Source: Macrostomum lignano | Taxonomy: Eukaryota | Assembly: GCA_002269645.1 (NCBI GenBank) | Contig: NIVC01000326.1 | Span: forward strand, 248,001-312,000 | DNA length: 64,000 nt | Reading direction: 5' to 3' | Shown here: in pieces, positions 10,036-48,500 of the stretch | How positions within the stretch are numbered: the stretch's first letter is position 1 | How the letters are laid out: every line of letters begins with the position of its first letter | Made by a program: the position numbers and the translations under genes | The notes under the pieces: model-generated | Told to the model about the DNA's origin: nothing | The model's input: only the letters and a program-made list of their open reading frames with translations | Database searches by the model: none

Positions 10036-10122
10036 CACTCCCAGTTTCAGCGCCCCGGAGCCCCGCAAAGAATCGGGTGAACAGACTGCGCCAGACTTGC
10101 CGCCGCCCCCAAACCCGATAGC

Positions 10123-13100
10123 ATGGACGCCCTGCTGAGCGAGGAGATGTGGCTGCCAGCCAACATCAGCTGGGCTCGCCTATACGCCTCCAGACCTGAC
10201 GGCCGGCTGACGCCGCGGCCAGTTCACCTGACAATGTCGCTGGCGTGCGGCCTGGCGTTCTGCCTACTGCGCTACCTGGTTGAGACCTTCCTGCTGTTCC
10301 CCTGGGCAGGCGCTGGGGCCTCGCCGATGCACCGAAGGATGCCTTCAGGCCGGTGACGCCAAACAAGCGACTTGACGCCGTTTTTAGACTGAACCGGCGG
10401 CCGACAGTCGATCAGATGTCGGCTCTGTCCGGCGAGCTGGGCTGGTCGGACAAATCGGTCGCTAACTGGTTTCGGAGGAAGCGAAATCAGCTGAAGTCTT
10501 CCACGCTGAGGAAGTTTGTGGAGAGCGCGTGGTTCTTCCTGCACTACAGCTGCATTCTGGTGTATGGCTTCGCCGTTCTCGTTGGTGCGTTTGGGGCCTG
10601 ATCTGCCCCCGATTTATGTACTGTTGCACTATTTACAAGAGAAGGAAATGCAATTTTTCATTGGTCAAAACTGGATGCGGCTGAATTTTTCTGCCAACTA
10701 TTGTTCATTAATAAAGAAATATTGGTGTGTAGTTCGGAATAAGCTGCTTGGCGAGTCGATGCCGCCAACTGAGGCGCTTCATTGCAATGCACCAGCTAAA
10801 GGCACCTCCTTGTCAATCATAGGGAAGCAAATACTGAATCGAATGCTTACATGGCATCAGTCTTGGTCATGAAGTAGTTGGTGCTGGAGGCATGACTTGA
10901 TTGTAAGCAAGGAACATGTTTTCGTTGCCTCACTTCGTCTGTAAACTTGATTAAGGCCGATCGTGATGTTCTCGATTTCATGCTGTACAGAGTCCAGGTG
11001 CTGCGACAGCCTTGAGTCCGGGGGTCAAGGTTGCAAAAGCCCATTGTGCATGTACTTTCCGAGCTGGGTATAATTTTTTACTTGACGCGTCGGTAGCAGT
11101 CTCAGTAAAGCGCTTGTATCTGCCGATAGCTTTTTTATCAACTTGCAGCTGACGTTTATTAACATAAAATATTTATTGGCGTCGATTCAGTCAGAACTAA
11201 GACACTTTCCTCCGTTTTCATTTCACCTATAGTTGGTGTGTAGAAAGAGTTCAAAATCATGAGATGGGTCTTCCATTTTGTAAGCTTTGGCAACAAAATA
11301 ATATATTTGTCTCTTGTTCAAACAGCAAACGTTTATCTTGGCTTTGAACTACGATTCCTAATGCATTCGGGCTGTAATCTCATCTTTCTGGGCATTGAGT
11401 AATCTCAGAAATCGCAATAAACCGTATCCATCGAGCCAAATAGACCCGTACATCAAAGATAAACAACGTCCTATCGATCAATCCATCGTTCATTGCTACC
11501 TCTGACATCCAAGCGTTCTACGAGCGTATGTCCGGTACTTCAAGCAGGTTTCACAATGCACTTTTCCGGCAACCTCTGCTTGCTCAGTGTGAAAATCTGA
11601 TTCTAAACGTTCTTTCACGCAACGCATTGCACTGAAGCTGCTTTGCGTCTCCCAGTACACTGTTGAACGCGAATTCGCGATGCCATTGTTATGCCCTTGA
11701 TAGAAGTATTAGACTCTCAAAGAGTTTTTTGCGCTCACCGTTACTCCGTCTGGCATACGAGAAGCAGGCTCGGCCATAAGTGTAACAGTGAAATCAACTG
11801 AATTCCACTTTGCTGTGAGAATCAAAAACTCCGTCTGGCACACGAGAAGCAGGCTCGGCCATAAGTGTAACAGTGAAATCAACTGAATTCCACTTTGCTG
11901 TGAGAATCAAAAACTCCGTCTGGCACACGAGAAGCAGGCTCGGCCATAAGTGTAACAGTGAAATCAACTGAATTCCACTTTGCTGTGAGAATCAAAAACT
12001 CCGTCTGGCACACGAGAAGCAGGCTCGGCCAAAAGTGTAACAGTGAAATCAATTGAATTCCACTGCTGTGAGAATCAAAAACTCCGTCTGGCACACGAGA
12101 AGCAGGCTCGGCCATAAGTGTAACAGTGAAATCAACTGAATTCCACTTTGCTGTGAGAATCAAAAACTCCGTCTGGCACACGAGAAGCAGGCTCGGCCAT
12201 AAGTGTAACAGTGAAATCAACTGAATTCCACTTTGCTGTGAGAATCAAAAACTCCGTCTGGCACACGAGAAGCAGGCTCGGCCATAGGTGTAACAGTGAA
12301 ATCAACTGAATTCCACTTTGCTGTGAGAATCAAAAACTCCGTCTGGCACACGAGAAGCAGGCTCGGCCATAAGTGTAACAGTGAAATCAACTGAATTCCA
12401 CTTTGCTGTGAGAATCAAAAACTCCGTCTGGCACACGAGAAGCAGGCTCGGCCATAAGTGTAACAGTGAAATCAACTGAATTCCACTTTGCTGTGAGAAT
12501 CAAAAACTCCGTCTGGCACACGAGAAGCAGGCTCGGCCATAGGTGTAACAGTGAAATCAACTGAATTCCACTTTGCTGTGAGAATCAAAAACTCCGTCTA
12601 ACACACGAGAAGCAGGCTCGGCCATAGGTGTAACAGTGAAATCAACTGAATTCCACTTTGCTGTGAGAATCAAAAACTCCGTCTAACACACGAGAAGCAG
12701 GCTCGGCCATAGGTGTAACAGTGAAATCAACTGAATTCCACTTTGCTGTGAGAATCAAAAACTCCGTCTAACACACGAGAAGCAGGCTCGGCCAAAAGTG
12801 TAACAGTGAAATCAATTGAATTCCACTGCTGTGAGAATCAAGAAACGCCACCACCCAGCACATCTATTTCCTTGGGACACTGAAATCTCCCCCTGACCTT
12901 GATATCTCCCTCTCTACGCAGGCAAGGACTACTTCTGGGATGCCCGGTACTGCTGGATTGGCTGGCCGGACCAAGCAGTGGACGCAGACATCTACTGGTA
13001 TTACATGATCTCCCTGGGCTACTACTGGTCCGCCATGTACTACATTTTCACCGACGTCAAGCACAAGGATTTTGCGGAGATGCTGATCCATCACGTGGTC

Positions 13101-13547
13101 ACTGTGTGCCTGATGTCCTTCAGCTGGTGCTTAAACTATGTCCGCATCGGAGCTCTCGTTCTTCTTGTACACGACGTGGTTGATCCGTTCATGCACCTGA
13201 CCAAGTGTTTGTCCTATGCTAGCAGCAACACCTGTCTTCGAGACATGATGTTTGTGGTGTTCATGGTCTGCTGGATCGTCACCAGGCTGACCATCTACCC
13301 GTTCTGGGTTGTCTACAGTGCCATGTTCCACAGCTGGGCCATTATTGGACCCTACAGATCGTGGTACATGTTTAATGGTTGCCTGCTTGTTCTACAGGTG
13401 CTGCACGTGATCTGGTTCTACTTTATCCTTCGCATCGCCCTATCCGTGGTCACTCAGGACCCCGACGCTAAGGATAGTCGCAGCGATTCAGAGATGTCCG
13501 CCACTGAAGACGTTCTAGACGATGGAGTCGACTTCAAGAATAAATAA
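10123..13547 (+). CDS. CERS: Ceramide synthase (Hox + TLC/Lag1p), copy 1; 1-nt frameshift (pseudogene or sequencing error)
   Basis: Exons 10123-10584 and 12922-13547. The C-run at 10299-10302 has 4 C versus 5 C in copies 2 and 3, which breaks the frame. Hox-like VANWFRRKRN and Lag1p HKDFAEMLIHH..HDVVD motifs are present. Confidence 0.85.
11743..12840. repeat. 85-bp tandem repeat (~13 copies) in CerS copy-1 intron
   Basis: Period 85 (ACTCCGTC at 11828, 11913, 11998); no unique spacers. Confidence 0.95.
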
Positions 13548-13609
13548 GGGTTTTGAAATTCCACCTTCTAACTGTCAGCTCATTATGGTGAATAGTAACG
13601 CTGTCTATC

Positions 13610-13880
13610 AGGGGATTCCCATGCTCGATTCTGTGAGCAGATTCCCATGCTCAGATCTGCAAGGGGATTCCTATGCTCGATTCTGTGAGTAGATTCCCAT
13701 GCTCAGATGCTCAGATCTGCAAGGGGATTCCTATGCTCGATTCTGTGAGTAGATTCCCATGCTCAGATGTCAGATCTGCAAGGGGATTCCTATGCTCGAT
13801 TCTGTGAGTAGATTCCCATGCTCAGATCTGCAAGGGGATTCCTATGCTCGATTCTGTGAATAGATTCCCATGCTCAGGTC
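13610..13880. repeat. ~50-bp repeat with TCCCATGCTCAGAT core, 3' of CerS copy 1 (duplicated at 19750-20020)
   Basis: Tandem units visible. Confidence 0.85.
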
Positions 13881-16261
13881 CGCGATAGAATTCCGCTGTT
13901 CTCTTGGGTCACTTGTGAAACTCACTAAGCCAATCCTAACATTTGAAAGAATTGTTTAGTAATTTCATTTTTGTGAAATAGGGATAGATTTGGGGTGTGG
14001 AGTGTTTCTAAGCATTGTGGAGACTGTTAGTTGATGCTGCATAGAAAGTCGGTCTGTATGGGGTGTACAACAATTAATTAACAATAGTAATACCAAAACA
14101 TTTCCGCTCGTCGAACTACCGGGGGTAAGCAAGTCGTCTGCCCTCCGGACCGTCGAGATGTTCAATGATTCTGTCAAAAGCTCTGATTTTTTCTATAAGC
14201 ACTGGTGTATTCAGTACAGTCTGACAGTCTGAAATTCGACATAGTTACAACAGGGCGTCCATAGTCGCATTGTGCCACCCGTTGAAGGTGCTGATGGCAT
14301 CAGGGTGATGACGGAATGCTTAAGAGATTCGCTGAGGATGTACAGGAGTTAAGGTTTGCCCACTGTCGGAGCTTGATCAGCGAAAATAGATAAAATCGCA
14401 AGAGGGTTCCACAGTCACCTGGTGCCACCTGTTGAAGGTCCAGAAGCTCTGAGTGAAGAGCAGTGCGTGCTGATGAAATATATCTTGACGGTCTGGAGGG
14501 CTGGCGACTTGTTTCTTGGTTTAGATGGTGCGCAACGAAAAGTTGGGCCGTGTTCTCACATTCCGTGTGCCTGCGTTGCTCCGTTCCAGCGCAGCAAAGA
14601 AAAATTCTCGGGAATCCCCCGTGGTAGTTCTACTGTTTAACACGCTATTTATTACTCCCTCTCATAATAAATTTGTCGTCGCTTATTCGACAATTTTTTT
14701 TAGATTTCCTTATTATGATAAAACATTCCGAATAATAAATTATATTTTGCTCAATTAGTACATGAAATTTGCCTAACCAAAACACAACTTCTGTCTCTGG
14801 TGTTCGCAACCTGCAATCCTTAAAACTTTTTTATCCGATTTTTTGCATAAATCTGTGCACTCGGACTGCACTCCCTTATCTAGTCTGCTTAGTGCCTGTC
14901 TCAGTCATTTGGCAGCTGTTTGTATGTCTTGGCTTTTTATTCTTTCAACTGAATTTGTGGCGTTTTTTTACTATTTTTACCTCTTCACTTACCCAAAATG
15001 TGTCAGTGAGACTACAAGCTGCAGGCTGTCTGTCAGCTGCAGGCTGTCCGTGTCAGCTGCAGGCTGTCTGTGTCAGCTGCAAGCTGTCTGTGTCAGCTGC
15101 AGGCTGTATCAACTGCACGCTGTCTGTGTCAACTGCAGGCTGTATCAACTGCACGCTGTCTGTGTCAACTGCTGGCTGTCAGCTGTAGGCTGTCAGATGC
15201 AGTTAGAATTTCCACCCGACTGTCAAAATCGGCATTATTCAGCCAGCCCAGCCGCTCCAGTCCGTCCTCGCCGCTGTCAACAATTAGCCATGTTTATTTT
15301 AGAATCCTGTTTACTAAAACCGCTGATCGATAATAATTTTTTACGGTATTGCCGGCTCCCAATACAGCATTGACACATTTTTCATGCTGGTTAAGGCCAG
15401 TAACTTTATAAAGTACTATGAGAAGTCGCAGTGGTTGCTTCAAAATATTTTACGTAATTTGATATGTAGAGATTTCTTAATATAGCCAACCCCCTGTCCA
15501 ATGTACACTCACTGCTAGCCAACCCCCTGCCCAATGACACTCACTGCTAGCCAACCCCTGTCCAATGTACATGTACACTCACTGCTAGCCAACCCCCTGC
15601 CCAATGTACACTCACTGCTAGCCAACCTCTGTCCAATTTACACTCACTGCTAGCCAACCCCCTGCCCAATGTACACTCACTGCTAGCCAACCTCTGTCCA
15701 ATTTACACTCACTGCTAGCCAACCCCTGTCCAATGTACACTCACTGCTAGCCAACCTCTGTCCAATGTACACTCACTGCTAGCCAACCCCTGTCCAATGT
15801 ACACTCACTGCTAGCCAACCTCTGTCCAATTTACACTCACTGCTAGCCAACCCCTGTACAATGTACACTCACTGCTAGCCAACCTCAGCCTAATGTACAG
15901 TTAGCACAATCCAGCCAACGTACACTCAGCACAAGCCAGCCCAATGTACACTCAGTGCAATCCAGCTAATGTGCACTCAGCACAAGCCAGCCCAATGTAC
16001 AGTCAGCACAAGCCAGCCCAATGTACAGTCAGCACAAGCCAGCCCAATGTACACTCAGCACAATCCAGCTAATGTGCACTCAGCACAATCCAGCCAATGT
16101 ACACTCACTGCTAGCCAACCCAATGTACACTCAGTGCAAGCCAGCCAGATGTACAGTCAGCACAATCCAGCCAACACTCCCAGTTGCAGCGCCCCGGAGC
16201 CCCGCAAAGAATCGGGTGAACAGACTGCGCCAGACTTGCCGCCGCCCCCAAACCCGATAGC

Positions 16262-19200
16262 ATGGACGCCCTGCTGAGCGAGGAGATGTGGCTGCCAGCC
16301 AACATCAGCTGGGCTCGCCTATACGCCTCCAGACCTGACGGCCGGCTGACGCCGCGGCCAGTTCACCTGACAATGTCGCTGGCGTGCGGCCTGGCGTTCT
16401 GCCTACTGCGCTACCTGGTTGAGACCTTCCTGCTGTTCCCCCTGGGCAGGCGCTGGGGCCTCGCCGATGCACCGAAGGATGCCTTCAGGCCGGTGACGCC
16501 AAACAAGCGACTTGACGCCGTTTTTAGACTGAACCGGCGGCCGACAGTCGATCAGATGTCGGCTCTGTCCGGCGAGCTGGGCTGGTCGGACAAATCGGTC
16601 GCTAACTGGTTTCGGAGGAAGCGAAATCAGCTGAAGTCTTCCACGCTGAGGAAGTTTGTGGAGAGCGCGTGGTTCTTCCTGCACTACAGCTGCATTCTGG
16701 TGTATGGCTTCGCCGTTCTCGTTGGTGCGTTTGGGGCCTGATCTGCCCCGATTTATGTACTGTTGCACTATTTACAAGAGAAGGAAATGCAATTTTTCAT
16801 TGGTCAAAACTGGATGCGGCTGAATTTTTCTGCCAACTATTGTTCATTAATAAAGAAATATTGGTGTGTAGTTCGGAATAAGCTGCTTGGCGAGTCGATG
16901 CCGCCAACTGAGGCGCTTCATTGCAATGCACCAGCTAAAGGCACCTCCTTGTCAATCATAGGGAAGCAAATACTGAATCGAATGCTTACATGGCATCAGT
17001 CTTGGTCATGAAGTAGTTGGTGCTGGAGGCATGACTTGATTGTAAGCAAGGAACATGTTTTCGTTGCCTCACTTCGTCTGTAAACTTGATTAAGGCCGAT
17101 CGTGATGTTCTCGATTTCATGCTGTACAGAGTCCAGGTGCTGCGACAGCCTTGAGTCCGGGGGTCAAGGTTGCAAAAGCCCATTGTGCATGTACTTTCCG
17201 AGCTGGGTATAATTTTTTACTTGACGCGTCGGTAGCAGTCTCAGTAAAGCGCTTGTATCTGCCGATAGCTTTTTTATCAACTTGCAGCTGACGTTTATTA
17301 ACATAAAATATTTATTGGCGTCGATTCAGTCAGAACTAAGACACTTTCCTCCGTTTTCATTTCACCTATAGTTGGTGTGTAGAAAGAGTTCAAAATCATG
17401 AGATGGGTCTTCCATTTTGTAAGCTTTGGCAACAAAATAATATATTTGTCTCTTGTTCAAACAGCAAACGTTTATCTTGGCTTTGAACTACGATTCCTAA
17501 TGCATTCGGGCTGTAATCTCATCTTTCTGGGCATTGAGTAATCTCAGAAATCGCAATAAACCGTATCCATCGAGCCAAATAGACCCGTACATCAAAGATA
17601 AACAACGTCCTATCGATCAATCCATCGTTCATTGCTACCTCTGACATCCAAGCGTTCTACGAGCGTATGTCCGGTACTTCAAGCAGGTTTCACAATGCAC
17701 TTTTCCGGCAACCTCTGCTTGCTCAGTGTGAAAATCTGATTCTAAACGTTCTTTCACGCAACGCATTGCACTGAAGCTGCTTTGCGTCTCCCAGTACACT
17801 GTTGAACGCGAATTCGCGATGCCATTGTTATGCCCTTGATAGAAGTATTAGACTCTCAAAGAGTTTTTTGCGCTCACCGTTACTCCGTCTGGCATACGAG
17901 AAGCAGGCTCGGCCATAAGTGTAACAGTGAAATCAACTGAATTCCACTTTGCTGTGAGAATCAAAAACTCCGTCTGGCACACGAGAAGCAGGCTCGGCCA
18001 TAAGTGTAACAGTGAAATCAACTGAATTCCACTTTGCTGTGAGAATCAAAAACTCCGTCTGGCACACGAGAAGCAGGCTCGGCCATAAGTGTAACAGTGA
18101 AATCAACTGAATTCCACTTTGCTGTGAGAATCAAAAACTCCGTCTGGCACACGAGAAGCAGGCTCGGCCAAAAGTGTAACAGTGAAATCAATTGAATTCC
18201 ACTGCTGTGAGAATCAAAAACTCCGTCTGGCACACGAGAAGCAGGCTCGGCCATAAGTGTAACAGTGAAATCAACTGAATTCCACTTTGCTGTGAGAATC
18301 AAAAACTCCGTCTGGCACACGAGAAGCAGGCTCGGCCATAAGTGTAACAGTGAAATCAACTGAATTCCACTTTGCTGTGAGAATCAAAAACTCCGTCTGG
18401 CACACGAGAAGCAGGCTCGGCCATAGGTGTAACAGTGAAATCAACTGAATTCCACTTTGCTGTGAGAATCAAAAACTCCGTCTGGCACACGAGAAGCAGG
18501 CTCGGCCATAAGTGTAACAGTGAAATCAACTGAATTCCACTTTGCTGTGAGAATCAAAAACTCCGTCTGGCACACGAGAAGCAGGCTCGGCCATAAGTGT
18601 AACAGTGAAATCAACTGAATTCCACTTTGCTGTGAGAATCAAAAACTCCGTCTGGCACACGAGAAGCAGGCTCGGCCATAGGTGTAACAGTGAAATCAAC
18701 TGAATTCCACTTTGCTGTGAGAATCAAAAACTCCGTCTAACACACGAGAAGCAGGCTCGGCCATAGGTGTAACAGTGAAATCAACTGAATTCCACTTTGC
18801 TGTGAGAATCAAAAACTCCGTCTAACACACGAGAAGCAGGCTCGGCCATAGGTGTAACAGTGAAATCAACTGAATTCCACTTTGCTGTGAGAATCAAAAA
18901 CTCCGTCTAACACACGAGAAGCAGGCTCGGCCAAAAGTGTAACAGTGAAATCAATTGAATTCCACTGCTGTGAGAATCAAGAAACGCCACCACCCAGCAC
19001 ATCTATTTCCTTGGGACACTGAAATCTCCCCCTGACCTTGATATCTCCCTCTCTACGCAGGCAAGGACTACTTCTGGGATGCCCGGTACTGCTGGATTGG
19101 CTGGCCGGACCAAGCAGTGGACGCAGACATCTACTGGTATTACATGATCTCCCTGGGCTACTACTGGTCCGCCATGTACTACATTTTCACCGACGTCAAG

Positions 19201-19686
19201 CACAAGGATTTTGCGGAGATGCTGATCCATCACGTGGTCACTGTGTGCCTGATGTCCTTCAGCTGGTGCTTAAACTATGTCCGCATCGGAGCTCTCGTTC
19301 TTCTTGTACACGACGTGGTTGATCCGTTCATGCACCTGACCAAGTGTTTGTCCTATGCTAGCAGCAACACCTGTCTTCGAGACATGATGTTTGTGGTGTT
19401 CATGGTCTGCTGGATCGTCACCAGGCTGACCATCTACCCGTTCTGGGTTGTCTACAGTGCCATGTTCCACAGCTGGGCCATTATTGGACCCTACAGATCG
19501 TGGTACATGTTTAATGGTTGCCTGCTTGTTCTACAGGTGCTGCACGTGATCTGGTTCTACTTTATCCTTCGCATCGCCCTATCCGTGGTCACTCAGGACC
19601 CCGACGCTAAGGATAGTCGCAGCGATTCAGAGATGTCCGCCACTGAAGACGTTCTAGACGATGGAGTCGACTTCAAGAATAAATAA
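16262..19686 (+). CDS. CERS: Ceramide synthase (Hox + TLC), copy 2, 362 aa, intact
   Basis: Exons 16262-16724 and 19061-19686 (phase 1, GT-AG, 2336-bp intron); Lag1p motif. Confidence 0.92.
17882..18979. repeat. 85-bp tandem repeat in CerS copy-2 intron
   Basis: Copy of 11743-12840. Confidence 0.95.
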
Positions 19687-22400
19687 GGGTTTTGAAATTC
19701 CACCTTCTAACTGTCAGCTCATTATGGTGAATAGTAACGCTGTCTATCAGGGGATTCCCATGCTCGATTCTGTGAGCAGATTCCCATGCTCAGATCTGCA
19801 AGGGGATTCCTATGCTCGATTCTGTGAGTAGATTCCCATGCTCAGATGCTCAGATCTGCAAGGGGATTCCTATGCTCGATTCTGTGAGTAGATTCCCATG
19901 CTCAGATGTCAGATCTGCAAGGGGATTCCTATGCTCGATTCTGTGAGTAGATTCCCATGCTCAGATCTGCAAGGGGATTCCTATGCTCGATTCTGTGAAT
20001 AGATTCCCATGCTCAGGTCCGCGATAGAATTCCGCTGTTCTCTTGGGTCACTTGTGAAACTCACTAAGCCAATCCTAACATTTGAAAGAATTGTTTAGTA
20101 ATTTCATTTTTGTGAAATAGGGATAGATTTGGGGTGTGGAGTGTTTCTAAGCATTGTGGAGACTGTTAGTTGATGCTGCATAGAAAGTCGGTCTGTATGG
20201 GGTGTACAACAATTAATTAACAATAGTAATACCAAAACATTTCCGCTCGTCGAACTACCGGGGGTAAGCAAGTCGTCTGCCCTCCGGACCGTCGAGATGT
20301 TCAATGATTCTGTCAAAAGCTCTGATTTTTTCTATAAGCACTGGTGTATTCAGTACAGTCTGACAGTCTGAAATTCGACATAGTTACAACAGGGCGTCCA
20401 TAGTCGCATTGTGCCACCCGTTGAAGGTGCTGATGGCATCAGGGTGATGACGGAATGCTTAAGAGATTCGCTGAGGATGTACAGGAGTTAAGGTTTGCCC
20501 ACTGTCGGAGCTTGATCAGCGAAAATAGATAAAATCGCAAGAGGGTATCCACAGTCACCTGGTGCCACCTGTTGAAGGTCCAGAAGCTCTGAGTGAAGAG
20601 CAGTGCGTGCTGATGAAATATATCTTGACGGTCTGGAGGGCTGGCGACTTGTTTCTTGGTTTAGATGGTGCGCAACGAAAAGTTGGGCCGTGTTCTCACA
20701 TTCCGTGTGCCTGCGTTGCTCCGTTCCAGCGCAGCAAAGAAAAATTCTCGGAATCCCCCGTGGTAGTTCTACTGTTTAACACGCTATTTATTACTCCCTC
20801 TCATAATAAATTTGTCGTCGCTTATTCGACAATTTTTTTTAGATTTCCTTATTATGATAAAACATTCCGAATAATAAATTATATTTTGCTCAATTAGTAC
20901 ATGAAATTTGCCTAACCAAAACACAACTTCTGTCTCTGGTGTTCGCAACCTGCAATCCTTAAAACTTTTTTATCCGATTTTTTGCATAAATCTGTGCACT
21001 CGGACTGCACTCCCTTATCTAGTCTGCTTAGTGCCTGTCTCAGTCATTTGGCAGCTGTTTGTATGTCTTGGCTTTTTATTCTTTCAACTGAATTTGTGGC
21101 GTTTTTTTACTATTTTTACCTCTTCACTTACCCAAAATGTGTCAGTGAGACTACAAGCTGCAGGCTGTCTGTCAGCTGCAGGCTGTCCGTGTCAGCTGCA
21201 GGCTGTCTGTGTCAGCTGCAAGCTGTCTGTGTCAGCTGCAGGCTGTATCAACTGCACGCTGTCTGTGTCAACTGCAGGCTGTATCAACTGCACGCTGTCT
21301 GTGTCAACTGCTGGCTGTCAGCTGTAGGCTGTCAGATGCAGTTAGAATTTCCACCCGACTGTCAAAATCGGCATTATTCAGCCAGCCCAGCCGCTCCAGT
21401 CCGTCCTCGCCGCTGTCAACAATTAGCCATGTTTATTTTAGAATCCTGTTTACTAAAACCGCTGATCGATAATAATTTTTTACGGTATTGCCGGCTCCCA
21501 ATACAGCATTGACACATTTTTCATGCTGGTTAAGGCCAGTAACTTTATAAAGTACTATGAGAAGTCGCAGTGGTTGCTTCAAAATATTTTACGTAATTTG
21601 ATATGTAGAGATTTCTTAATATAGCCAACCCCCTGTCCAATGTACACTCACTGCTAGCCAACCCCCTGCCCAATGACACTCACTGCTAGCCAACCCCTGT
21701 CCAATGTACATGTACACTCACTGCTAGCCAACCCCCTGCCCAATGTACACTCACTGCTAGCCAACCTCTGTCCAATTTACACTCACTGCTAGCCAACCCC
21801 CTGCCCAATGTACACTCACTGCTAGCCAACCTCTGTCCAATTTACACTCACTGCTAGCCAACCCCCTGCCCAATGTACACTCACTGCTAGCCAACCTCTG
21901 TCCAATGTACACTCACTGCTAGCCAACCCCTGTCCAATGTACACTCACTGCTAGCCAACCTCTGTCCAATTTACACTCACTGCTAGCCAACCCCTGTACA
22001 ATGTACACTCACTGCTAGCCAACCTCAGCCTAATGTACAGTTAGCACAATCCAGCCAACGTACACTCAGCACAAGCCAGCCCAATGTACACTCAGTGCAA
22101 TCCAGCTAATGTGCACTCAGCACAAGCCAGCCCAATGTACAGTCAGCACAAGCCAGCCCAATGTACAGTCAGCACAAGCCAGCCCAATGTACACTCAGCA
22201 CAATCCAGCTAATGTGCACTCAGCACAATCCAGCCAATGTACACTCACTGCTAGCCAACCCAATGTACACTCAGTGCAAGCCAGCCAGATGTACAGTCAG
22301 CACAATCCAGCCAACACTCCCAGTTGCAGCGCCCCGGAGCCCCGCAAAGAATCGGTGAACAGACTGCGCCAGACTTGCCGCCGCCCCCAAACCCGATAGC

Positions 22401-23660
22401 ATGGACGCCCTGCTGAGCGAGGAGATGTGGCTGCCAGCCAACATCAGCTGGGCTCGCCTATACGCCTCCAGACCTGACGGCCGGCTGACGCCGCGGCCAG
22501 TTCACCTGACAATGTCGCTGGCGTGCGGCCTGGCGTTCTGCCTACTGCGCTACCTGGTTGAGACCTTCCTGCTGTTCCCCCTGGGCAGGCGCTGGGGCCT
22601 CGCCGATGCACCGAAGGATGCCTTCAGGCCGGTGACGCCAAACAAGCGACTTGACGCCGTTTTTAGACTGAACCGGCGGCCGACAGTCGATCAGATGTCG
22701 GCTCTGTCCGGCGAGCTGGGCTGGTCGGACAAATCGGTCGCTAACTGGTTTCGGAGGAAGCGAAATCAGCTGAAGTCTTCCACGCTGAGGAAGTTTGTGG
22801 AGAGCGCGTGGTTCTTCCTGCACTACAGCTGCATTCTGGTGTATGGCTTCGCCGTCCTCGTTGGTGCGTTTGGGGCCGTGCTCGGGTTCGAATCCGCCTA
22901 CTGCTGCATTTGCTTGCCGTATCCTTGTAGCTTCCCTCCCAAACCTCCAGACTCTATCCTGACTCCCTCTCTTGCTAGAACGCTTTAATCTCTACCACTT
23001 ATTGCATGAAACCCTCTCTACGCAGGCAAGGACTACTTCTGGGATGCCCGGTACTGCTGGATTGGCTGGCCGGACCAGGCAGTGGACGCGGACATCTACT
23101 GGTATTACATGATCTCCCTGGGCTACTACTGGTCCGCCATGTACTATATTTTCACCGACGTCAAGCACAAGGATTTTGCGGAGATGCTGATCCATCACGT
23201 GGTCACTGTGTGCCTGATGTCATTCAGCTGGTGCTTGAACTATGTCCGCATTGGAGCTCTGGTCGTGCTAATTCACGACGTGGTTGATCCGTTCATGCAC
23301 CTGACCAAGTGCTTGACCTATGCTAGCAGCAACACCCGTCTTCGAGACATCATGTTTGTAGTGTTCATGGTCTGCTGGATTGTCACCAGGCTGACCATCT
23401 ACCCGTTCTGGGTTGTCTACAGTGCCATGTTCCACAGCTGGACCATTATTGGACCCTTCAGATCGTGGTACATGTTTAATGGTTGCCTGCTTGTTCTACA
23501 GGTGCTGCATGTGATCTGGTTCTACTTTATCCTTCGCATCGCCCTATCCGTGGTCACCCAGGACCCCAATACAAAGGACAGTCGCAGTGATTCAGAGATG
23601 TCCGCCGCTGAAGACGGTCCAGACAATAAAGGCGACTCGCAGCTTAAGAAGGGGCTGTGA
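22401..23660 (+). CDS. CERS: Ceramide synthase (Hox + TLC), copy 3, 365 aa, short intron and diverged exon 2
   Basis: Exons 22401-22863 and 23026-23660 (162-bp intron). C-terminus EDGPDNKGDSQLKKGL differs from copies 1 and 2. Confidence 0.92.
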
Positions 23661-33245: not shown

Positions 33246-33666
33246 AGACTTGTTTAGTTACTAGTGCTTGTCTCTTATCACTATAGTAGTCACTACAAGT
33301 TGCAATCGTCTATAAAGCACGCAAGCCTTTATAGTCACTTTACAAGTTACGAGCCAAAAGGCCAAGTTCCGGACTCCTAGACAATTTGTTGAGCTTGATC
33401 ACACGAGTCAATCGAAAGTCGTTCTGTCATTAACGGCTAGTTTAGCTCTGCTCTGCTGGACCTCATTCTGCTATTGTACTCAAGCCAGTTGTGTATCTTC
33501 GCTCCGAGCCAATTACGAGAATACGAGTATCAAAGCTCATTTAAAAGCTCACGCTTTCAAATATGCCTATGGCGACCCTCTGCTCACTCAACTCACTCAA
33601 GCACTGAGTCAGTCTGTGGCAAGTACAGCTGGGCATAAAACTGTCTGCGGAGAAACTCTGAGACAG

Positions 33667-33900
33667 ATGAACTGGCGACTCGCTGCCGCCCTGCTGCTGC
33701 TGCAGCTTCTGTCAAGTCCGGCTCTGGCCGAGGTCTGGGCGCCCGACCAGGAGCTCGCAGACGGCGCTGCGCCACTGCCTGATGACCAGCCGGTGGCAGG
33801 AGACTGGACTCCAGATGAGGAAGACCTCGAAGATGCTGGACCTGAGGCCAAGTTTCCCGGGCGGCCTCCTCCAGTGTATCGAAACCGTTATATTAACTGA
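33667..33900 (+). CDS. Small secreted prepropeptide 1 (77 aa: signal, acidic pro-region, cationic 15-mer FPGRPPPVYRNRYIN)
   Basis: Leu-rich signal ending SPALA; homology to 35658-35888; AATAAA at 33929. Confidence 0.75.
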   Translation: MNWRLAAALLLLQLLSSPALAEVWAPDQELADGAAPLPDDQPVAGDWTPDEEDLEDAGPEAKFPGRPPPVYRNRYIN

Positions 33901-34009
33901 TCGACTTTCTTTTGCCTAAGCTTTGACTAATAAATACATAAATATATACACTGTTGCTGACTAGCCAAACAATTGATTAGAGCTTTTTTCACCAGGTCTT
34001 TGTTTCTTC

Positions 34010-35000
34010 TACCTCCCGCTGCCCCTTCCACTCTGCCTCCTGTTTCCCTCTGCTGCCCCCCTCTACCTCCTTCTGTTTCACTCTACCCCCCTCTACCTTC
34101 TGTTTCCCTCTGCTGCCCCCCTCTACCTCCTTCTGTTTCACTCTACCCCCCTCTACCTTCTGTTTCCCTCTGCTGCCCCCCTCTACCTCCTTCTGTTTCA
34201 CTCTACCCCCCCCCTCTACCTCCTGTTTCCCTCTGCTGCCCCCTCTACCTCCTTCTGTTTCACTCTACCCCCCTCTACCTCCTGTTTCCCTCTGCTGCCC
34301 CCTCTACCTTCTTCTGTTTCCCTCTGCTGCCCCCCCCCTCTACCTCCTTCTGTTTCCCTCTGCTGCCCCCTCTACCTCCTTCTGTTTCCCTCTGCTGCCC
34401 CCCCTCTACCTCCTTCTGTTTCCCTCTGCTGCCCCCTCTATCTCCTGTTTCCCTCTACCCCCCTCTACCTCCTTCTGTTTCCCTCTACCCCCTCTACCTC
34501 CTGTTTCCCTCTACCCCCCTCTACCTCCTTCTGTTTCCCTCTGCTGCCCCCTCTACCTCCTTCTGTTTCCCTCTACCCCCCTCTACCTCCTTCTGTTTCC
34601 CTCTGCTGCCCCCCTCTACTTCCTGTTTCCCTCTGCTGCCCCCCTCTACCTCCTTCTGTTTCCCTCTGCTGCCCCCCTCTACCTCCTTCTGTTTCCCTCT
34701 ACCCCCCTCTACCTCCTTCTGTTTCCCTCTACCCCCCTGTACCTCCTGTTTCCCTCTACCCCCCCTCTACCTCCTTCTGTTTCCCTCTGCTGCCCCCCTC
34801 TACCTCCTTCTGTTTCCCTCTACCCCCCTCTACCTCCTTCTGTTTCCCTCTACCCCCCTGTACCTCCTGTTTCCCTTTACCCCCCCCTACCTCCTTCTCT
34901 TTCCCTCTGCTGCCCCCCTCTACCTCCATCTGCCTCCCACTGCCATCCTTCTGCCTCCTTTATGTTTCCATCTGCCTCCCACTGCCTCCCTTGCCTCCCT
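34010..35000. repeat. C/T-rich minisatellite (CTCTACCTCCTTCTGTTTCCCTCTGCTGCCCC family)
   Basis: Tandem degenerate units; I see no AG dinucleotide on + between 33996 and 35172. Confidence 0.9.
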
Positions 35001-35657
35001 CTGCCCCCCTTATGCCTCCCTCTGCCCCCCTTATGTCTCCCTGTGCCTCCGCTCTGCCTCTCCCCTCTTAACTCTCCTGTTACCTTTCCATCTCAACCTC
35101 CCCACTTCCATCTCTCGCTATCTACCTCCCTCCTCTCTCCGCTTGTGCTGACCCTCATTATTCTCTTGTCGCAGCTGTTGTGTTTACTGCTGAAGCTTTT
35201 TTCGAACCGAGAAAACTCAGTTGCATTTTGCAAATACTTTAAGACCGCAGCAATGTGAGCTCACTACTGTGCCTGAACTCACGTGTTTTGCCCCGCTGCC
35301 GCCAGGTGCCTGGGGTCGCTGTTTACAGCCTCCAAAGCCTCCATCTTCAATTGAAGCGAGTCCCATCGTGCCGCTCAAAAGATGCGCCCACCAAAGCCAG
35401 GCACAATGCAGCAATTCTTGCCTCGAGGCTTAAGAAGTCATTGTGCGATAAGCAAAGACGTCTAGTCAGCTGACCTGGACTGGAGACCGCCAATGCTTCG
35501 TCTCAGCCACATGAATTGCCAGTCCAAGTGTTTACAACCAGCAGTCCCCGGCTTCGCGCTCGTTTTCAGCCACGTGAGGTGAATGAAAAAAAATTGCGCT
35601 TCTATAAAGTTCAGGTGCGCGAGGCTGCAGCTCGCAGCTCCCAGCTCAGATCTCAGC

Positions 35658-35888
35658 ATGAAGCTCGCTTGGTACCTGTGCACCGCCGCCGTCGCCGCGT
35701 TTCTGCTGGCGGACCTGTCGCTGGCCGACGTCTGGGCGCCCGACCAGCTGGAGGACGCGGCGCCGCTGCCCGAGGCCGGCCAGCAGCAGCCGGAGGAGGC
35801 CATGGCCGAGGAGGACATGGACCTCGGGCCCGAGGCCAAGGCACCTGGGAAGCCGGGTCCGGCAAGTTATCGAGTTTACCGCTGGTAG
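35658..35888 (+). CDS. Small secreted prepropeptide 2 (76 aa: signal, acidic pro-region, cationic 15-mer APGKPGPASYRVYRW)
   Basis: Signal ending LSLA; shares VWAPDQ, AAPLP and GPEAK with 33667-33900; GC-rich codon usage. Confidence 0.78.
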   Translation: MKLAWYLCTAAVAAFLLADLSLADVWAPDQLEDAAPLPEAGQQQPEEAMAEEDMDLGPEAKAPGKPGPASYRVYRW

Positions 35889-36953: not shown

Positions 36954-37985
36954 TTAGAAAACGAGCATTTCAAACTCCTTCAGTGAGTAGTAATGGCCGA
37001 ACGGATGTTTCCAAATAACACCCTGAGCGTACGGGCCGCCAATGGCTGAAGATAAGTCTCTGTACCGTCCGTTGGGGTGGGTGGCGAAGCAGCTGGAGAA
37101 CCACCAGGCGCCAATGAAGGTAGTCGCGCAGCTTCCGCTCCCGTCAAAATGCGTATCGTGATCGGCGTCCTTGGTGCTGAACTGCATGCCGCTCTGGGGA
37201 GACATCGCGTCGCCGATGCCGGCGCTGCTGGAGAAGCCGGACACGCTCAGCCGGTAGCTGTCCGACTCGGGACCCACGGAGAAGCTGGAGTACTCAGCCC
37301 AGTGCTCAGAGTCGTTCCACGTCTTCATCAGGATCCTCAGCTTCCGAGGACCAGAAGCAGTGAGAGCGTGGAGAGAGTTTAGGCCTGGGAAGATGCGGAT
37401 GTCATGGCGGTCTTTGTCATTGAAGTCCGAGTTGGAAAAGGAAGCGAATGGAGCAGATCTGGGATGCACTCACCGATCCAGTAGTTTCCGTCGGGTCCCT
37501 CGCCGAACTCGCTCTGGTACTGAGTCCAGTTGCGGTAAAAGTCCACTGAGCCGGACACCCTGTGCTGCACGGTGGTCCAGCAGTCACTGCCGGCTGTCTG
37601 CAAGGTGACACACAGGTGTGCCAGGTTACCACGCGTTAAATTGTGGTAGTGATGCTACACATCTAACAGAGTGACTCACCCACACTCGCTGAGCTCCCTT
37701 GCTCGCATTGCGGCACTTCCTGCAGTGGCTCAGGCCCAGGCGACACCTGAAGTGAGTGCACAGGCCGGAACTGGCGCTGAACGCCACCAGCTGCACAGCG
37801 GGGTTCGAGCCTGCAGTTGCCATGCAGTCGATGTCGCTCAGTGCCGGAAACGAAGAAGCAGCCTCATAGTCGGCCAGGCCGTCTCGGCTCAGCCGCCACG
37901 TTCTCTCAGCTGGCACGTTTCCGGCGAGAGGATGGAGGGCAGCGAGCAGCAGGATGGCCGCTTTGAGCACACTTACAGAGCACAT
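36954..37985 (-). CDS. Secreted fibrinogen-related (FReD) protein with N-terminal PAN/apple-like region, ~286 aa
   Basis: Exons 37985-37680, 37597-37474 and 37384-36954 (82- and 89-bp GT-AG introns, 861 nt). Motifs [40 protein letters not shown] and GAWWFSSC; signal peptide present. Confidence 0.9.
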
Positions 37986-39640: not shown

Positions 39641-42384
39641 TCAGGAGCCTCTTAGAAACAGCGACAAATAGACAGCAGTCAGTCCGCTGGTGTGGGACGA
39701 GCAGGCTCCTGAAAAAGTACAGTGAGTCCTATTTGCGTTTTGAATTTGAAACCGATTAACAAAATGACACAAAGAACGAGTTCAATTTCTATGGATCTAT
39801 GGACTGTTAATGACTGTCATTAATTGTGGACTCAGGAATCAGGACTCGCCTGATTCGGGACTCATGATTCGGGACTCGGGACTCATGATTCAGGACTCAG
39901 GACTCGGGACTCAGGAGTCGCGACTCAGGACTCAGGACTCGGGACTCAGGAGTCGCGACTCAGGACTCAGGTCTCGGGACTCAGGACTCGGGACTCAGGA
40001 CTCGGGACTCAGGACTCGGGACTCAGGACTCGGGACTCAGGAGTCGCGACTCAGGACTCAGGACTCGGGACTCAGGACTCAGGACTCGGGACTCACCATC
40101 AAGCATCACTTCGTGCATGAGCTTCCGTCCAGTGGGAGCCGTCTGCCGAGTGCTGAGCGAGTTGAGCTCCTCAGGGATGCAGCCCAGCCCCTCGTCCTGC
40201 AGCCGGCGCAGGTGCAGCAGAGTGGAGTCGGTGAAGAAGTCTCGGTAGCCCAGAGAGCCGCAGATGAAAGCTGCAACACGGCGAAGCAATAAAGATAATT
40301 TTTATATTTTCATAATGCCGACAACTTCTTCAACAGTTCCTAAAGCATCTGGTAGCTGAAGTTCTTCGTGATTTCAGTTTTCGTGTTTGAAGAAGTCGTT
40401 TTTTTCTAAAATCGATCACACACACATACCTACCTACCGACGAACCATTTATATGGAAGTTAGTAAAACTGAGGAATGTCAATGCCATGCCTACTCGGCA
40501 ACATGCTCATACAGAGTGTCACAGTAGCCCTGGCTCTCCCATCGTCAGTTAAAAATTACAACCGCCAACAGTGTTCCAGGTCTCAAGCAGAGGTGTCGCC
40601 ATGAACTTTATGGTGGGGGGGGGCGAAGCCAAGAATTCAACATGTGCATGTACATGACTAAATTCCTACATGTCCATTACTTTGAGAATCGGTGTTGTCA
40701 GCGCATTTTAGCGCTGGAACTCATTTTAGCGCCGCAGGTACTCATTTTAGCGCCACAGGCACTCATTTTAGCGCCGCAGGAACTCATTTTAGCGCCGCAG
40801 GAACTCATTTTAGCACCACAGGCACTCATTTTAGCGCCGCGGTCACTCATTTTAGCGCCGCGGGCACTCATTTTAGCGCCACAGGCACTCATTTTAGCGC
40901 CGCGGGCACTCATTTTAGCACCACAGGCACTCATTTTGGCACCAATGACGCTATATTTTGGCGCCTGAAAGAAAAATTATTGATTGCCACAACGGGTCAC
41001 AAGGTGGGGTGGAGAGACAAAGCATTCGCATGTCCCCCTTAGCTTTTACTGGGGGTCCCCCCCGGTGGCGATGCGCCTGGTCTCAAGTGTGCTCACCCTG
41101 CTCCAATGCCAGGTCAATCATGTCGATGCCAGCCGAAGTCAAGGCCAGAATTTTCCGGTGCTCAGCCAGGGCAGACCGACAGGCCTCGGCGGCCACAGAC
41201 TGGTCCACTGACCGGCCGTTGGACAGTCTGAGGTGGCAGGAGCGCTGCAGTGCGGGGCATTCCGAGATCGCTGCAATATGCATGTGGAAATCCTAGGCTA
41301 TGGAAACGGGACCATGATAAAGAGTCTGGCTCACATCGATGGCGGCGGCCCAGTAGATCAGCTGGTGCGTCAGGGCGTAGCCCATGCTTCGCTCAGTGCT
41401 GAGAAACAGCCAGCTGCATGCTGGCGGAGGCTGGCAGGGCGATGAGCGGCTGAAGCGAATCATTAATATTTTTGCAAGGGCTTTAGATAATTCTGTATTC
41501 CACGCTATTTTTGGATGCAGCGACCATTGCTGAATCTACAGTCGCATCTCATGTTCCACACAACTCGAAATGTACCTTCTTTAGACCTCTTGAACTTAAG
41601 GCTGTTGGGACATTTTGAAGTTGCAACATTCGAGAAGGTTTGGCAGAAAGCTGCATAAAAAATCCAAGCATCTACAAACCTGAAGTTCAAGCAGTTGAAA
41701 TCAAACATTTTCGGCTCTTGCAGTTAATACTGCCGGGGTCAAACTCCTGATCACCCTTCATCTTGACAGGTCGCTGAAGACTCACCTTTTGCTTGGACTG
41801 TCCAACAATCTGTTGAAGCAGGCATCGCCCACCGTATCATTGTACTTCATCACCAATCTTTCAACGGACTTCAGCCAAGCCTGAGCCTGCTTAGCGTCTA
41901 CCGCAGCTCCGTGATGTCCCGAGTCTTCAAGCCAGCGCCAGCGAAACCGCCTCTGACTGAGCAGCCGCCGCATCACAGCCTCCATAGGCCGGCAAATGCC
42001 CCAGTAGGTTTCAACATCATAGTCTCCACCGCTTCTCGACTTCTTCCCGCCTACTCGAGCTCGAAAATCGACCAGCACTTGTCGAAGCTGATCGACAGCT
42101 CGACGCAGCTCGGCGGCCTGAGCGTCGCCGCACAGATCTGCAACTCGACGCTCCGTAGCGCTGGCGCTGGTGGGCGCCGAGTCGAAGGTCAGGAAGGCGA
42201 TAGCGGCTCCAAAGTAGCCGTCGGCGTCGATCTTCAGCGAGTTCCTGGCGAAGAGCTCAGCCAGCCGAGACAGCGAGTCAGCTGCTGCACAAATCATGCC
42301 AGAATTCTCAACGCTGGCGGCTGCAGTTCGATAGGTTGGCAACAGAAGAAGAGTCAGAAGTTGCAGGATCTCCCAATAGTGCAT
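39641..42384 (-). CDS. C16orf89: UPF0764 / C16orf89-like secreted protein, paralogue A, ~383 aa
   Basis: Exons 42384-41786, 41449-41335, 41292-41097, 40270-40097, 39708-39641 (1152 nt, phases consistent, one 42-bp intron). Motifs GYALTHQLIYW, DLALEQAFICGSLGY, QDEGLGC and ACSSHTSG match C16orf89 (GYSLSHQLLY, DLFMENIMLCG, WQ..EGCF, GCSSHNTA). Confidence 0.85.
39830..40092. repeat. 7/14-bp repeat (ACTCAGG / ACTCGGG) in C16orf89-A intron 4
   Basis: Array starts inside the donor site GTGAGTCCCGAGTCC (- strand). Confidence 0.92.
40588..41079. mobile_element. hAT-type MITE (492 bp) with an internal 21-bp tandem array, in C16orf89-A intron 3
   Basis: Perfect 8-bp TSD GTCTCAAG (40580-40587 and 41080-41087). 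Imperfect TIRs CAGAGGTGTCGCCA / CAGGCGCATCGCCA (10 of 14 match). Array ACTCATTTTAGCGCCGCAGG at ~40700-40945. Confidence 0.8.
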
Positions 42385-45596: not shown

Positions 45597-48500
45597 TCAG
45601 CACTGTGGAATGTTGCACGTTTCCCATCTCCTCGACGTCCTGGTGTAGCACCACGGACGCTTCTCGCTGCTGGCAGTGGTGATGCGGCAGGTGTTTCCGA
45701 TCAGACGGGCCAGCTTCAGAGCAGTGTTGGGCACGTGGCAGGTTTTCCCCACTGTGCCGCTGGGGCAGCTCTTGATCTCCCAGCCCTGGCACGGCTTGCC
45801 GCTCCGGGTCACAGCGATGCCCGACACGAAGTTCTTCGTGCCTTTCTTGTAGCACTCGCGCAGTCCTGCAACACAGATTAAAAGACTAAAAGAACTGCCG
45901 AACATGATCTCTAATCTATTGTACTTAGCGAACGGAGGTTCTATTTGTACGAGCCAGTCTTTTTTTATTAGAGGCAGGGGGTTTGTGTGCACCCTGGCGC
46001 ACTTTAAGCGACATAGGCACACAACCGGCGAGAGGCATTACTGCTCATCCCGCCGACTCCCCTGAGCAGGCAGACAAGCGCGCGGATACGTACGCAGGCA
46101 CACACTCACACAGGAGTGTACAGCGGCCCTAACTTTACTTTATCGTTAGGCATGTACACTTCACTGCGCCTTGGGGGGTTGGCTCTCAAGGCCATTAATT
46201 GCACGAGCAGAGCCAAGCCGAAATTCCAATTCAGCCCCAAACTAATGTGACTGCACTTGGAATCGAGCCTGGGTCGCTGGCACACCACAGCTTGCGCTAG
46301 ACCGCTGGGCTACGCCCCCCCCCCTACGAGCTAGTCTACTGAAACCCTTATTTGCAATTGTCAGCGTCATAGCCAATCAGATAGCCAATGCTCAAGATTC
46401 AAGCTTCGCTTACTGACCTCCAACGTTCATTTCTCCTTTTTGATGCTAGCAATCGGCAGTCCATATCGGCAGCCTGATAATGATTGCTACAGGAATAGAA
46501 AGCGATATATGTGTTGCGCACTCACACGCGCTCACACAGGGTGTACAGCGGCCCTGACTTGCTAATCGTCAGATTGTACACTCTCTGTGCCTTGGGGGTT
46601 GGCCCTCATGTACAAACTAGCTGGCCACTATGATGTACTCACTGGGTCCGCAAAGAGGAATGTTGCAAGTTTCCCATCGAGTCGAAGTCTTCGTGTAACA
46701 CCACGGCTTGTTCGAGCCGCCTTGCTCCGTGAAGGTTCGGCACGTGTTGCCAGTGGATTGGGACGCTTTCACAGTAAGGTTGGGGACGTGGCAGGTCCTT
46801 TTCAGCGTATGCCAGGAACAATAACGAACCGTCCAGCTCTGGCACAGCCTGGAGCTCTTTGTTCGGCTCACTGAAGTACTGACAAAGTTCTTATTAGCGA
46901 AGTAGCACTCGCCAAACTCTGTGGGATGCAGGAGACGACCAACAAGAGCGATTAGAAACGTAACTTATGATTTGAGGGGTGCGTGAACTTCTTGGTGCAC
47001 ACCAGTAGGTTAACTTCTTCAATGCTTCCATAACACGTCTAACGCGTCGCGTAATAGTCTGTACACTCACAAGGCGCACGCTTATTGTGTAAATGCACTA
47101 CAAAAGCCAACGTTCTGTATGAAAATCGTTATTGCTAAAAACAACAAAATTCTTGAAGTTGAATTTCGGTTTGAAAAATGGCTATAATAAATATTCCCCA
47201 TTGGCAGCACTAGCCATAGTAGCTACCCATTGGCAGCACTAGCCATAGTAGCTACCCATTGGCAGCACTAGCCATAGTAGCTACCCATTGGCAGCACTAG
47301 CCATAGTAGCTAGCTACCCATTGGCGCAATCCTTTCTTGATTCTGAAAATAAGCAAACACAAGACACCAAAACTTACTGTAGCACTTGGTTCGCTGAGCG
47401 TTCGTAGCGATGGACCCGTACGGACACTTCATACAACGACTCGATCCTGATGACGGAGCGTAGTAGCCCAGAGAGCATTGCGTGCATCTCGACGAGCCGG
47501 CATTCGAAAACGAGCCTGCAGAACAAGGCCTGCAGTTTCTCGAACCTCGGCCGGGCGCGAATGTGCCAGCCTTGCACTTGCTGCAGGAAGCCGCTCCGGT
47601 AGACGAAATGTAGGTTCCGGGTGAGCAGTACTGGCAAGAGCCGCTGGAGTGGGCGTAGGATCCCGCTGGGCAGCTGGCACACCTTGTGGAGCCGGTTTTG
47701 GCCGTGACGCTACCGGCACTGCACTTTCTGCACTTGGAGGACCCACTTGATGAAGCGAAATAGTTTTTCTGACAAGGCAGGCAAGCGGAACTACTCGACT
47801 GACGAACTTTCGCGTTATAATGTCCGGCGGGACACTTTATGGGTCTTATAGAGCCTTTATTTGAAACATAGGTCCCCTGTGGTGCAATTTTACAGACCGC
47901 AGATCCTTCATTCGGCGCGTAGGTGCCCAGGTCGCAATGCTTGCATCCTTTCATCCCTTCGACTGGAGCATATTGACCCTTGGGACATCTCGAACAAGCT
48001 CGGGAACCAGAGCCTGGCGAAAACTGACCAACTGGACATTTTTTACAGCTAGTTGCCGAGCTGCTGAAGGTTCCAGCAGGACACTTTCGACAGGCAGAGC
48101 TGTTCGCCTGTCCTACTTGAGAGTTGACTGTACCAGCAGGGCAGCTTTGGTAACTTTTTGCTCCTCTTTGTGATACATACGTGCCTTTTGGAGCTTTGAT
48201 GCAAACAGACTGCCCCCATTCGGCTGGTATGAACCTGGGGCGCACTGCGAGCACTTCATCGAGCCCGCACTCTCGGAGAATGTACCTGGAGAGCACTTTT
48301 TGCATGGTTGACCTTTCGCGGGACTATACTCGCCTTTTTTGCACGAGTTGCTGCAAGTCCTGGAGCCCTCCACACTTGACGTACCGGCAGGACACTTGGT
48401 GCACTTTACCTGGCCCCTCTTTGCAGCCGAGAAGCCTCTGGAGCACGGCTTGCACTGCTTCAGCCCTTGCGAGTCTCCGTAGTGACCGTAAGGACACGGC

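Follow-up and report, generated by a model that had tools for sequence, protein, structure and literature searches.

Layout of genes A and B

The sequence analysed here, referred to as the window, is a 64 kb stretch of contig NIVC01000326.1 (assembly GCA_002269645.1) from Macrostomum lignano, a free-living flatworm belonging to the Macrostomorpha, and all coordinates are positions in this window. Two neighbouring intronless paralogues were found in tandem on the + strand, namely gene A (33667-33900) and gene B (35658-35888), and the conservation and annotation described below support the view that both are real protein-coding genes for secreted proteins. Together they appear to form a genuine, previously uncharacterised pair of secretory-protein genes, with a prepropeptide-like bipartite design that is familiar in kind and new in sequence.

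The coding sequence (CDS) of gene A specifies 77 amino acids (aa). A signal peptide of 21 aa (MNWRLAAALLLLQLLSSPALA; 33667..33729), with a hydrophobic core, small residues at -3 and -1 and a predicted cut between ALA and E, is followed by an acidic pro-region of 41 aa (EVWAPDQELADGAAPLPDDQPVAGDWTPDEEDLEDAGPEAK; 33730..33852) with a net charge of ~-13, in which EVWAPDQ (33730-33750), AAPLP (33766-33780) and GPEAK (33838-33852) are found. The product ends in a basic tail of 15 aa (FPGRPPPVYRNRYIN; 33853..33897; +3, ~1846 Da), after which the stop codon occupies 33898-33900. A TATA-like element, TTTAAAA (33540..33546, + strand), lies ~20-30 nucleotides (nt) 5' of the annotated partial-CDS starts, and a polyadenylation signal, AATAAA (33929..33934, + strand), is located 29 nt past the stop.

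Gene B encodes 76 aa and has the same parts in the same order. Its signal peptide of 23 aa (MKLAWYLCTAAVAAFLLADLSLA; 35658..35726) has a predicted cut between SLA and D, and precedes an acidic pro-region of 38 aa (DVWAPDQLEDAAPLPEAGQQQPEEAMAEEDMDLGPEAK; 35727..35840; net ~-11) that includes DVWAPDQ (35727-35747), AAPLP (35757-35771) and GPEAK (35826-35840). The basic tail, also 15 aa (APGKPGPASYRVYRW; 35841..35885; +3, ~1705 Da), is followed by a stop codon at 35886-35888. A motif scan identified a TATA box, TATAAA (35603..35608, + strand), inside the sequence TCTATAAAG; for polyadenylation, variant hexamers only were found.

In the layout common to A and B, the signal peptide is thus followed by (E/D)VWAPDQ and AAPLP, then by a disordered stretch of strongly acidic character, and finally by GPEAK and the tail of 15 residues. 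The tails, which have 0 acidic and three basic residues each, both start X-Pro-Gly-(R/K)-Pro. The original prediction, which had described two open reading frames (ORFs) with this layout, an anionic pro-piece before a cationic tail, and tails of exactly 15 residues with no acidic and three basic residues and an X-Pro-Gly start, was borne out in each of these respects in both genes. Up to the Lys of GPEAK the charge sums to -13 (A) and -11 (B), against +3 in each tail. After removal of the signal peptide, the mature chains would comprise 56 aa (A) and 53 aa (B), with masses of 6.2 and 5.8 kDa and net charges of ~-10 and -8, and both products are free of cysteine. A structure prediction with AlphaFold2 (AF2) gave a mean predicted local distance difference test score (pLDDT) of 59.7 and a predicted template modelling score (pTM) of 0.21, and stable helix was confined to the signal peptide. 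As the AF2 model is of low confidence, with helix at the signal peptide alone, the mature chain looks intrinsically disordered.

The signal peptides were assessed by n/h/c-region pattern, the -3/-1 rule and hydropathy, and by these rules each has a basic n-region, a hydrophobic core of 11-15 residues and A-x-A or S-x-A at -3/-1.

Conservation, annotation and relatives

The locus is present three times in the assembly, in the window, in a near-identical copy on NIVC01002741.1 and in a diverged copy on NIVC01001574.1 (L003). The gene order, a Mod_r-domain gene followed by A and B, is kept in all three loci, all six A/B ORFs are intact, and the AATAAA of gene A is likewise retained in every copy. 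Compared with L003, the CDS identities were 97.4% and 96.5%, and those of the unique flanking and intergenic DNA were 91.7-93.8%. Third codon positions account for 8 of the 14 CDS differences. In gene B, all 97 nt from 35561 to the ATG, a segment that includes the TATA box and the 5' untranslated region, are unchanged in the three loci. The replacements relative to L003 are N2K, W3C, D31N and I76F in gene A, and a V-to-T change in the signal peptide and a G-to-L change in the tail of gene B, such that the L003 tail of A ends ...RYFN and that of B is APGKPLPASYRVYRW.

Both genes are represented in GenBank by protein models (accession numbers PAA66257.1, PAA55513.1 and PAA66256.1), and the sister-contig members of the same 90% clusters bear the name 'hypothetical protein BOX15_Mlig... 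[Macrostomum lignano]'. The complete 77-aa CDS at the sister locus (PAA66257.1) agrees with the single-exon structure proposed originally. The submitted annotation, Mlig_RNA_3_7_DV1.v1.coregenes, was derived from RNA-seq and transcriptome assembly and not ab initio (PMC5730564). As the annotation draws on RNA-seq only, assembled transcripts should exist for A and B, which is indirect evidence, taken from the provenance of the models and not from read coverage. The annotated partial proteins of gene A begin AYGDPLL or DPLLTQ, corresponding to ~33562-33574, and the annotated 5' ends of the partial CDSs of gene B fall at ~35625-35647; these ends sit 20-35 nt downstream of TTTAAAA (33540) and TATAAA (35603), respectively.

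An exact copy of the 9-mer TCTATAAAG recurs at 33309-33317, 358 nt 5' of the gene A ATG, in a frame open from 33316, and might be a distal alternative promoter of A. As a promoter motif common to A and B it was rejected, as it is the sole shared 9-mer, is not proximal in A (-358) and is no better than shuffled sequence. A bacterial promoter and terminator scan was set aside because this is an animal genome.

The proteins encoded by A and B are 49% identical, and a tblastn search of one against the other inside the window gave E = 3e-10, a similarity that appears far beyond chance. Silent sites between the genes are saturated (synonymous divergence, dS, ~1.2), from which the duplication is judged to be old. 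Of 35 aligned residues that are identical in A and B, 16 are encoded by different codons, including three of five in AAPLP and two of five in GPEAK, and the persistence of identical residues through synonymous changes points to selection at the protein level and not to recent gene conversion. The LA-VWAPDQ block is exempt from this argument. The 18 nt coding for VWAPDQ are identical, as had been predicted, and 26 of 27 nt agree once the three codons ahead of them are included, which may be due to conversion or codon bias. GC content at third codon positions (GC3) is 0.60 in A and 0.87 in B.

Constraint is unevenly spread over the products. The ratio of non-synonymous to synonymous divergence (dN/dS) is ~0.29 for the acidic part and ~0.72 for the signal peptide, and the value of ~0.55 for the tail is unreliable, as it is based on only 15 codons at saturation. 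The acidic part, ~63% identical between A and B despite three indels in the pro-region, thus appears to be under purifying selection.

Very short ORFs without homologues outside the species could also arise by chance in a duplicated, GC-rich segment or lie in transcripts that are not coding, and the GC-rich sequence does give long antisense ORFs as well. However, frame, signal peptide, motifs and tail length are kept although silent sites are saturated, the six copies are intact, the CDSs outdo their flanks in conservation, differences from L003 are biased to third positions, and the GenBank models come from an RNA-seq and transcriptome-based annotation. A non-coding origin is therefore considered very improbable, and it is very likely that the A/B product is a real secreted protein.

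No Pfam-A family was found for either protein using hmmscan with E up to 10. A word-indexed search of 5.8 billion proteins, made with single sequences and with a four-sequence profile, returned two A/B clusters only; when 1.84 billion representatives were searched exhaustively by profile, the sole additions were three bacterial repeat proteins. These, which are FG-GAP/VCBS-like, were rejected as relatives because the match is a chance one to 'DQPVAGDW' or PVAGDW-type repeats. The segment of gene A concerned, 'PVAGDWTPD' (33793-33816, residues 43-50), mimics the PVAGDW(N/D)GDG core of such repeats, and as it is absent from paralogue B the likeness is probably coincidental. For proteins so short, HMMER is blind to very distant relatives in libraries so large, and other Macrostomum transcriptomes apparently lie outside the libraries searched; 'orphan' is used here to mean that there is no relative among annotated proteins.

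No third copy of the family was found in the window by hmmsearch and tblastn with a profile of the pair and six-frame translation, so that the family count proposed originally gives only A and B for this stretch. A weak match at 41142-41297 was to unrelated sequence. The A/B peptide strings were not met in the main texts covered by a literature search, and the identifiers Mlig023285, Mlig020697 and Mlig020052 were met neither in those texts nor in supplements of PMC5730564, PMC5816591, PMC7336406 and PMC12896417, the tables of which were only partly covered, making this absence uninformative. Within this scope, A and B appear to be an orphan family restricted to this lineage, with two members for each haploid locus, in line with the new family originally proposed.

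Proposed processing of the products

Genes A and B are best viewed as transcribed, TATA-driven tandem genes for pre-pro-proteins of ~8 kDa. The signal peptide would be removed after ALA (A) or SLA (B) on entry into the secretory pathway, and the chain could then be cleaved behind the lone Lys of GPEAK, which is invariant. Such a cut would yield an acidic 38-41-mer of ~4.1-4.4 kDa starting (E/D)VWAPDQ, and a cationic 15-mer starting X-Pro-Gly-(R/K)-Pro. An X-Pro N-terminus is typically resistant to aminopeptidases and is common in stable bioactive peptides. This would follow the logic of bipartite precursors, as in taxon-restricted host-defence and secretory peptides. Taken as a whole, the explanation that A and B are orphan secreted precursors processed after GPEAK is preferred tentatively, at a little less than an even chance.

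The release of 15-mers, which was part of the original prediction, is an inference from the conserved GPEAK only. The GPEAK-x-PG-(R/K)-P block is conserved and its five invariant residues end at the sole Lys of the acidic part, and the tail is 15 residues long in both paralogues despite the indels in the pro-region. Cleavage after this Lys, judged as a step by itself, is rated as nearly an even possibility.

Several points weigh against processing. The lone Lys of GPEAK is not a canonical prohormone-convertase site, since monobasic sites usually have a basic residue at P4, P6 or P8, whereas these positions are occupied here by Pro, by Ala (A) or Leu (B), and by Glu (A) or Met (B), respectively. 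Neither a dibasic site nor a C-terminal Gly for amidation is found in A or B. The signal-peptide predictions are rule-based and are not the output of a trained predictor. Conservation is lower in the tail than in the acidic part, with 6 of 15 residues identical in A and B and a dN/dS of ~0.55, and between the homeologous copies two of 30 tail residues are changed compared with one of 79 in the pro-region. The divergence of the locus copies (five synonymous changes and six replaced codons) is too small for a meaningful dN/dS. In view of this lower conservation of the tail, the conserved GPEAK block could instead be a binding motif of an uncleaved protein.

The idea behind the original prediction would have suffered had the tails been free of constraint across the paralogues. 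This is true only in part, as length, charge, the pair of Tyr residues and the frame xPG(R/K)PxP...YR are constant in A and B, whereas identity falls below that of the acidic part and the tail is still the more variable half. A fast tail fits a quickly evolving effector, and is equally consistent with a main function that lies outside the tail.

A and B may instead encode small secreted acidic disordered proteins that are never processed. The 53-56-aa chain would then itself be the end product and might belong, for instance, to a gland secretion such as mucus or rhabdites, or to glands of the pharynx, the reproductive system or the adhesive organ. Interaction motifs would be provided by VWAPDQ, AAPLP and GPEAK-xPG(R/K)P, and the basic tail would be an electrostatic anchor or self-neutralising segment. 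Constraint is strongest in the acidic part and not in the tail, the candidate cut site is non-canonical, the conserved block spans the proposed cut and the chain is disordered and cysteine-free, all of which are consistent with an unprocessed chain. Compact, TATA-driven, intronless genes with high GC3 would also be compatible with abundant gland products. The exact equality of tail length and the sharp switch of charge at the invariant Lys are left unexplained, though they are not contradicted. These data can be read equally well as those of an unprocessed secretory protein of a gland, which is considered quite possible, at distinctly below an even chance.

For the role of the product, the largest share of a rough division goes to other gland or secretory cargo, which nonetheless falls short of even; a neuro-endocrine signal would be much less likely, host defence a little less likely again, and the rest is assigned to roles unknown.

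M. lignano is a tractable model in which RNA interference, transgenesis and in situ hybridisation are routine. If the products of A and B are processed and active, they would represent a new flatworm-specific family of secreted peptides in this model; if they are unprocessed gland cargo, the pair is a routine case of taxon-restricted secretory genes. The orphan pair offers two concrete and cheap hypotheses, namely host defence and adhesive release. The second arises from the duo-gland adhesive organ of M. lignano, for which Wunderer et al. (2019) postulated a small negatively charged releasing factor that detaches the cationic cohesion protein Mlig-ap1 (PMC6410801). The acidic 38-41-mer (net -11 to -13, ~4.1-4.4 kDa) could conceivably be that factor, in which case the basic tail would hold it in a condensed or inert state within the granule of the releasing gland, up to the cut at GPEAK. 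This is a long shot, and it requires expression in the tail plate or releasing gland.

Surrounding sequence and comparison with known systems

The window has a GC content of 50% and is rich in minisatellites, with ~30 distinct arrays (periods of 10-85 nt) that take up much of the 64 kb and give rise to most of the long mechanical ORFs. This load agrees with the repeat-rich nature of the M. lignano genome. The DNA that separates A from B consists largely of a CT-rich minisatellite (34036..35024) with a period of ~30 nt, ~31 copies and a higher-order period of ~121, the length and unit variants of which vary across the three locus copies. It gives long spurious ORFs on both strands.

A fibrinogen C-terminal (FReD) domain, identified with a Pfam E-value of 2e-30, is encoded by an exon (36954-37469, - strand) that lies ~1 kb beyond gene B on its downstream side. 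Further downstream, a 1291-aa open frame and an overlapping 331-aa ORF (47310-51988, - strand) encode a MACPF/perforin domain followed by many ephrin-receptor-like and TNFR-like Cys repeats, making this a possible candidate for a pore-forming immune effector.

Elsewhere in the window, a ceramide-synthase gene (TLC domain and homeodomain exons) is present in three copies within 9056-23660. Two of these, at 12978-13547 and 19117-19686, encode identical proteins and are offset by exactly 6139 bp, an offset shared by the flanking ORFs and satellites, and the third, at 23082-23660, is diverged. The repetition could be due to a recent tandem duplication or an assembly artefact. A further paralogous pair of ORFs, at 41782-42384 and 61121-61708 (both - strand; ~195-200 aa), shares a near-identical long central block (SLSRLAELFARNSLKIDADGYFGAAIAFLTFDSAPTS onward), and the N-terminus of the second is signal-like. 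No family was found for either ORF in Pfam; the contig annotation has a weak DUF4735 match for a 251-aa gene (L001 17720-18811, - strand) whose coordinates correspond to ORF 41782-42384.

Three structural or hormonal identities were considered for A and B and rejected. A collagen-like G-X-Y pattern around GPEAKAPGKPGP fails because the register breaks, a structural protein of the mussel-foot or eggshell 3,4-dihydroxyphenylalanine (DOPA) type does not fit a single short tail without repeats, and a truncated neuropeptide Y (NPY) or pancreatic polypeptide (PP) would lack its RxRY-amide end.

Like the neuropeptide prohormones of flatworms and other bilaterians, such as those for neuropeptide F (NPF) and FMRFamide-like peptides (FLPs), A and B specify small secretory precursors with one C-terminal candidate peptide. 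They could be neuropeptide or hormone precursors, expressed in neurons or neurosecretory cells, in which either the non-amidated C-terminal 15-mer or an N-terminal VWAPDQ peptide acts on a receptor. A small single-peptide precursor with a signal peptide (here rule-based) is typical of the class, an X-Pro N-terminus is common among stable bioactive peptides, and the motifs are kept between old paralogues. However, KR and RR sites, a Gly amidation donor and an RF- or RY-amide are all absent, and conservation is higher in the spacer than in the candidate peptide, whereas neuropeptide precursors usually show the opposite. An NPY/NPF peptide would be ~36-40 aa long, directly after the signal peptide, and end RxR(F/Y)-Gly-(K/R), whereas the tails end ...NRYIN* and ...VYRW*. 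The FPGRP... and ...RYIN of tail A recall the two ends of vertebrate NPY/PP, but the defining RxRF/Y-amide C-terminus is absent. No match to known neuropeptide families was found in Pfam or in the 5.8-billion and 1.84-billion protein searches, and the sequences were not met in the papers searched. A role as a neuropeptide or hormone is therefore doubtful.

The original prediction favoured defence peptides, that is, cationic 15-mers with antimicrobial activity held inactive by the anionic pro-piece. The bipartite architecture and the taxon-restricted tandem pair are consistent with this, as is a tail that evolves faster than the prepro part, a feature of many antimicrobial peptide and toxin families. 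The FReD and MACPF genes, both within 15 kb and of kinds often related to immunity, also fit, though in an animal genome neighbourhood is weak evidence. However, the tails are short and only +3, have no amphipathic helix signal (hydrophobic moments at 100 degrees of 0.15 and 0.39), and show no similarity to known antimicrobial peptide families in Pfam or the protein libraries. Effector families are usually expanded and this one has two members only, and the literature search found no antimicrobial or other host-defence peptide family for Macrostomum. Host defence is thus regarded as unlikely.

The likeness to apidaecin-type peptides that had been suggested is a loose one. Pro-rich antimicrobial peptides (apidaecin, pyrrhocoricin, drosocin, Bac7) have repeated PRP or PxP-Arg units, a high charge and usually >=18 aa, whereas the tails of A and B, with 15 aa, 4 (A) or 3 (B) Pro residues and a net charge of +3, have one (R/K)P unit each and no homology to these peptides. 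The GRPPPVYRNRY of tail A loosely recalls the PRPxY/IYNRN segments of pyrrhocoricin and oncocin. The suggested analogy with melittin, matured by dipeptidyl peptidase, does not hold. The pro-piece of promelittin is acidic and rich in Pro and Ala, like those of A and B, but these have no strict X-(Pro/Ala) periodicity up to the mature N-terminus, on which stepwise removal by dipeptidyl peptidase depends. The even positions of A start V, A, D, E, A, G, A, L, D, Q, with more residues other than Pro or Ala beyond them, while B fails likewise.

Amphibian skin precursors of the dermaseptin superfamily share with A and B a signal peptide, an acidic spacer, a basic cut point and a C-terminal peptide. 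In this superfamily conservation is greater in the prepro part than in the mature peptide, and A and B show the same pattern. However, the dermaseptin-type precursors are cut at Lys-Arg, have signal peptides that are strongly conserved and mostly give amphipathic helices, often with an amidated end. In A and B, which are not homologous to them, the Lys stands alone, conservation of the signal peptide is poor (dN/dS ~0.7) and the Pro-rich tails are non-helical.

The precursors of the arminin and periculin type from Hydra are products of genus-restricted genes, have no sequence similarity to A and B and number 9-28 members and not two. The cationic C-terminal part of arminin is ~31 aa long and much more basic than the A/B tail of 15 aa and +3. 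For the Hydra antimicrobial peptide families, bipartite charge, tandem paralogues and taxon restriction are stated hallmarks (PMC10945409). Genes A and B share with the arminin and periculin type a signal peptide, an anionic N-terminal part, a cationic C-terminal part, orphan status and tandem paralogues, and with charges of -13 and -11 against +3 the pair has the bipartite design of arminin-like precursors, a likeness that defines a class of architecture and not of homology.

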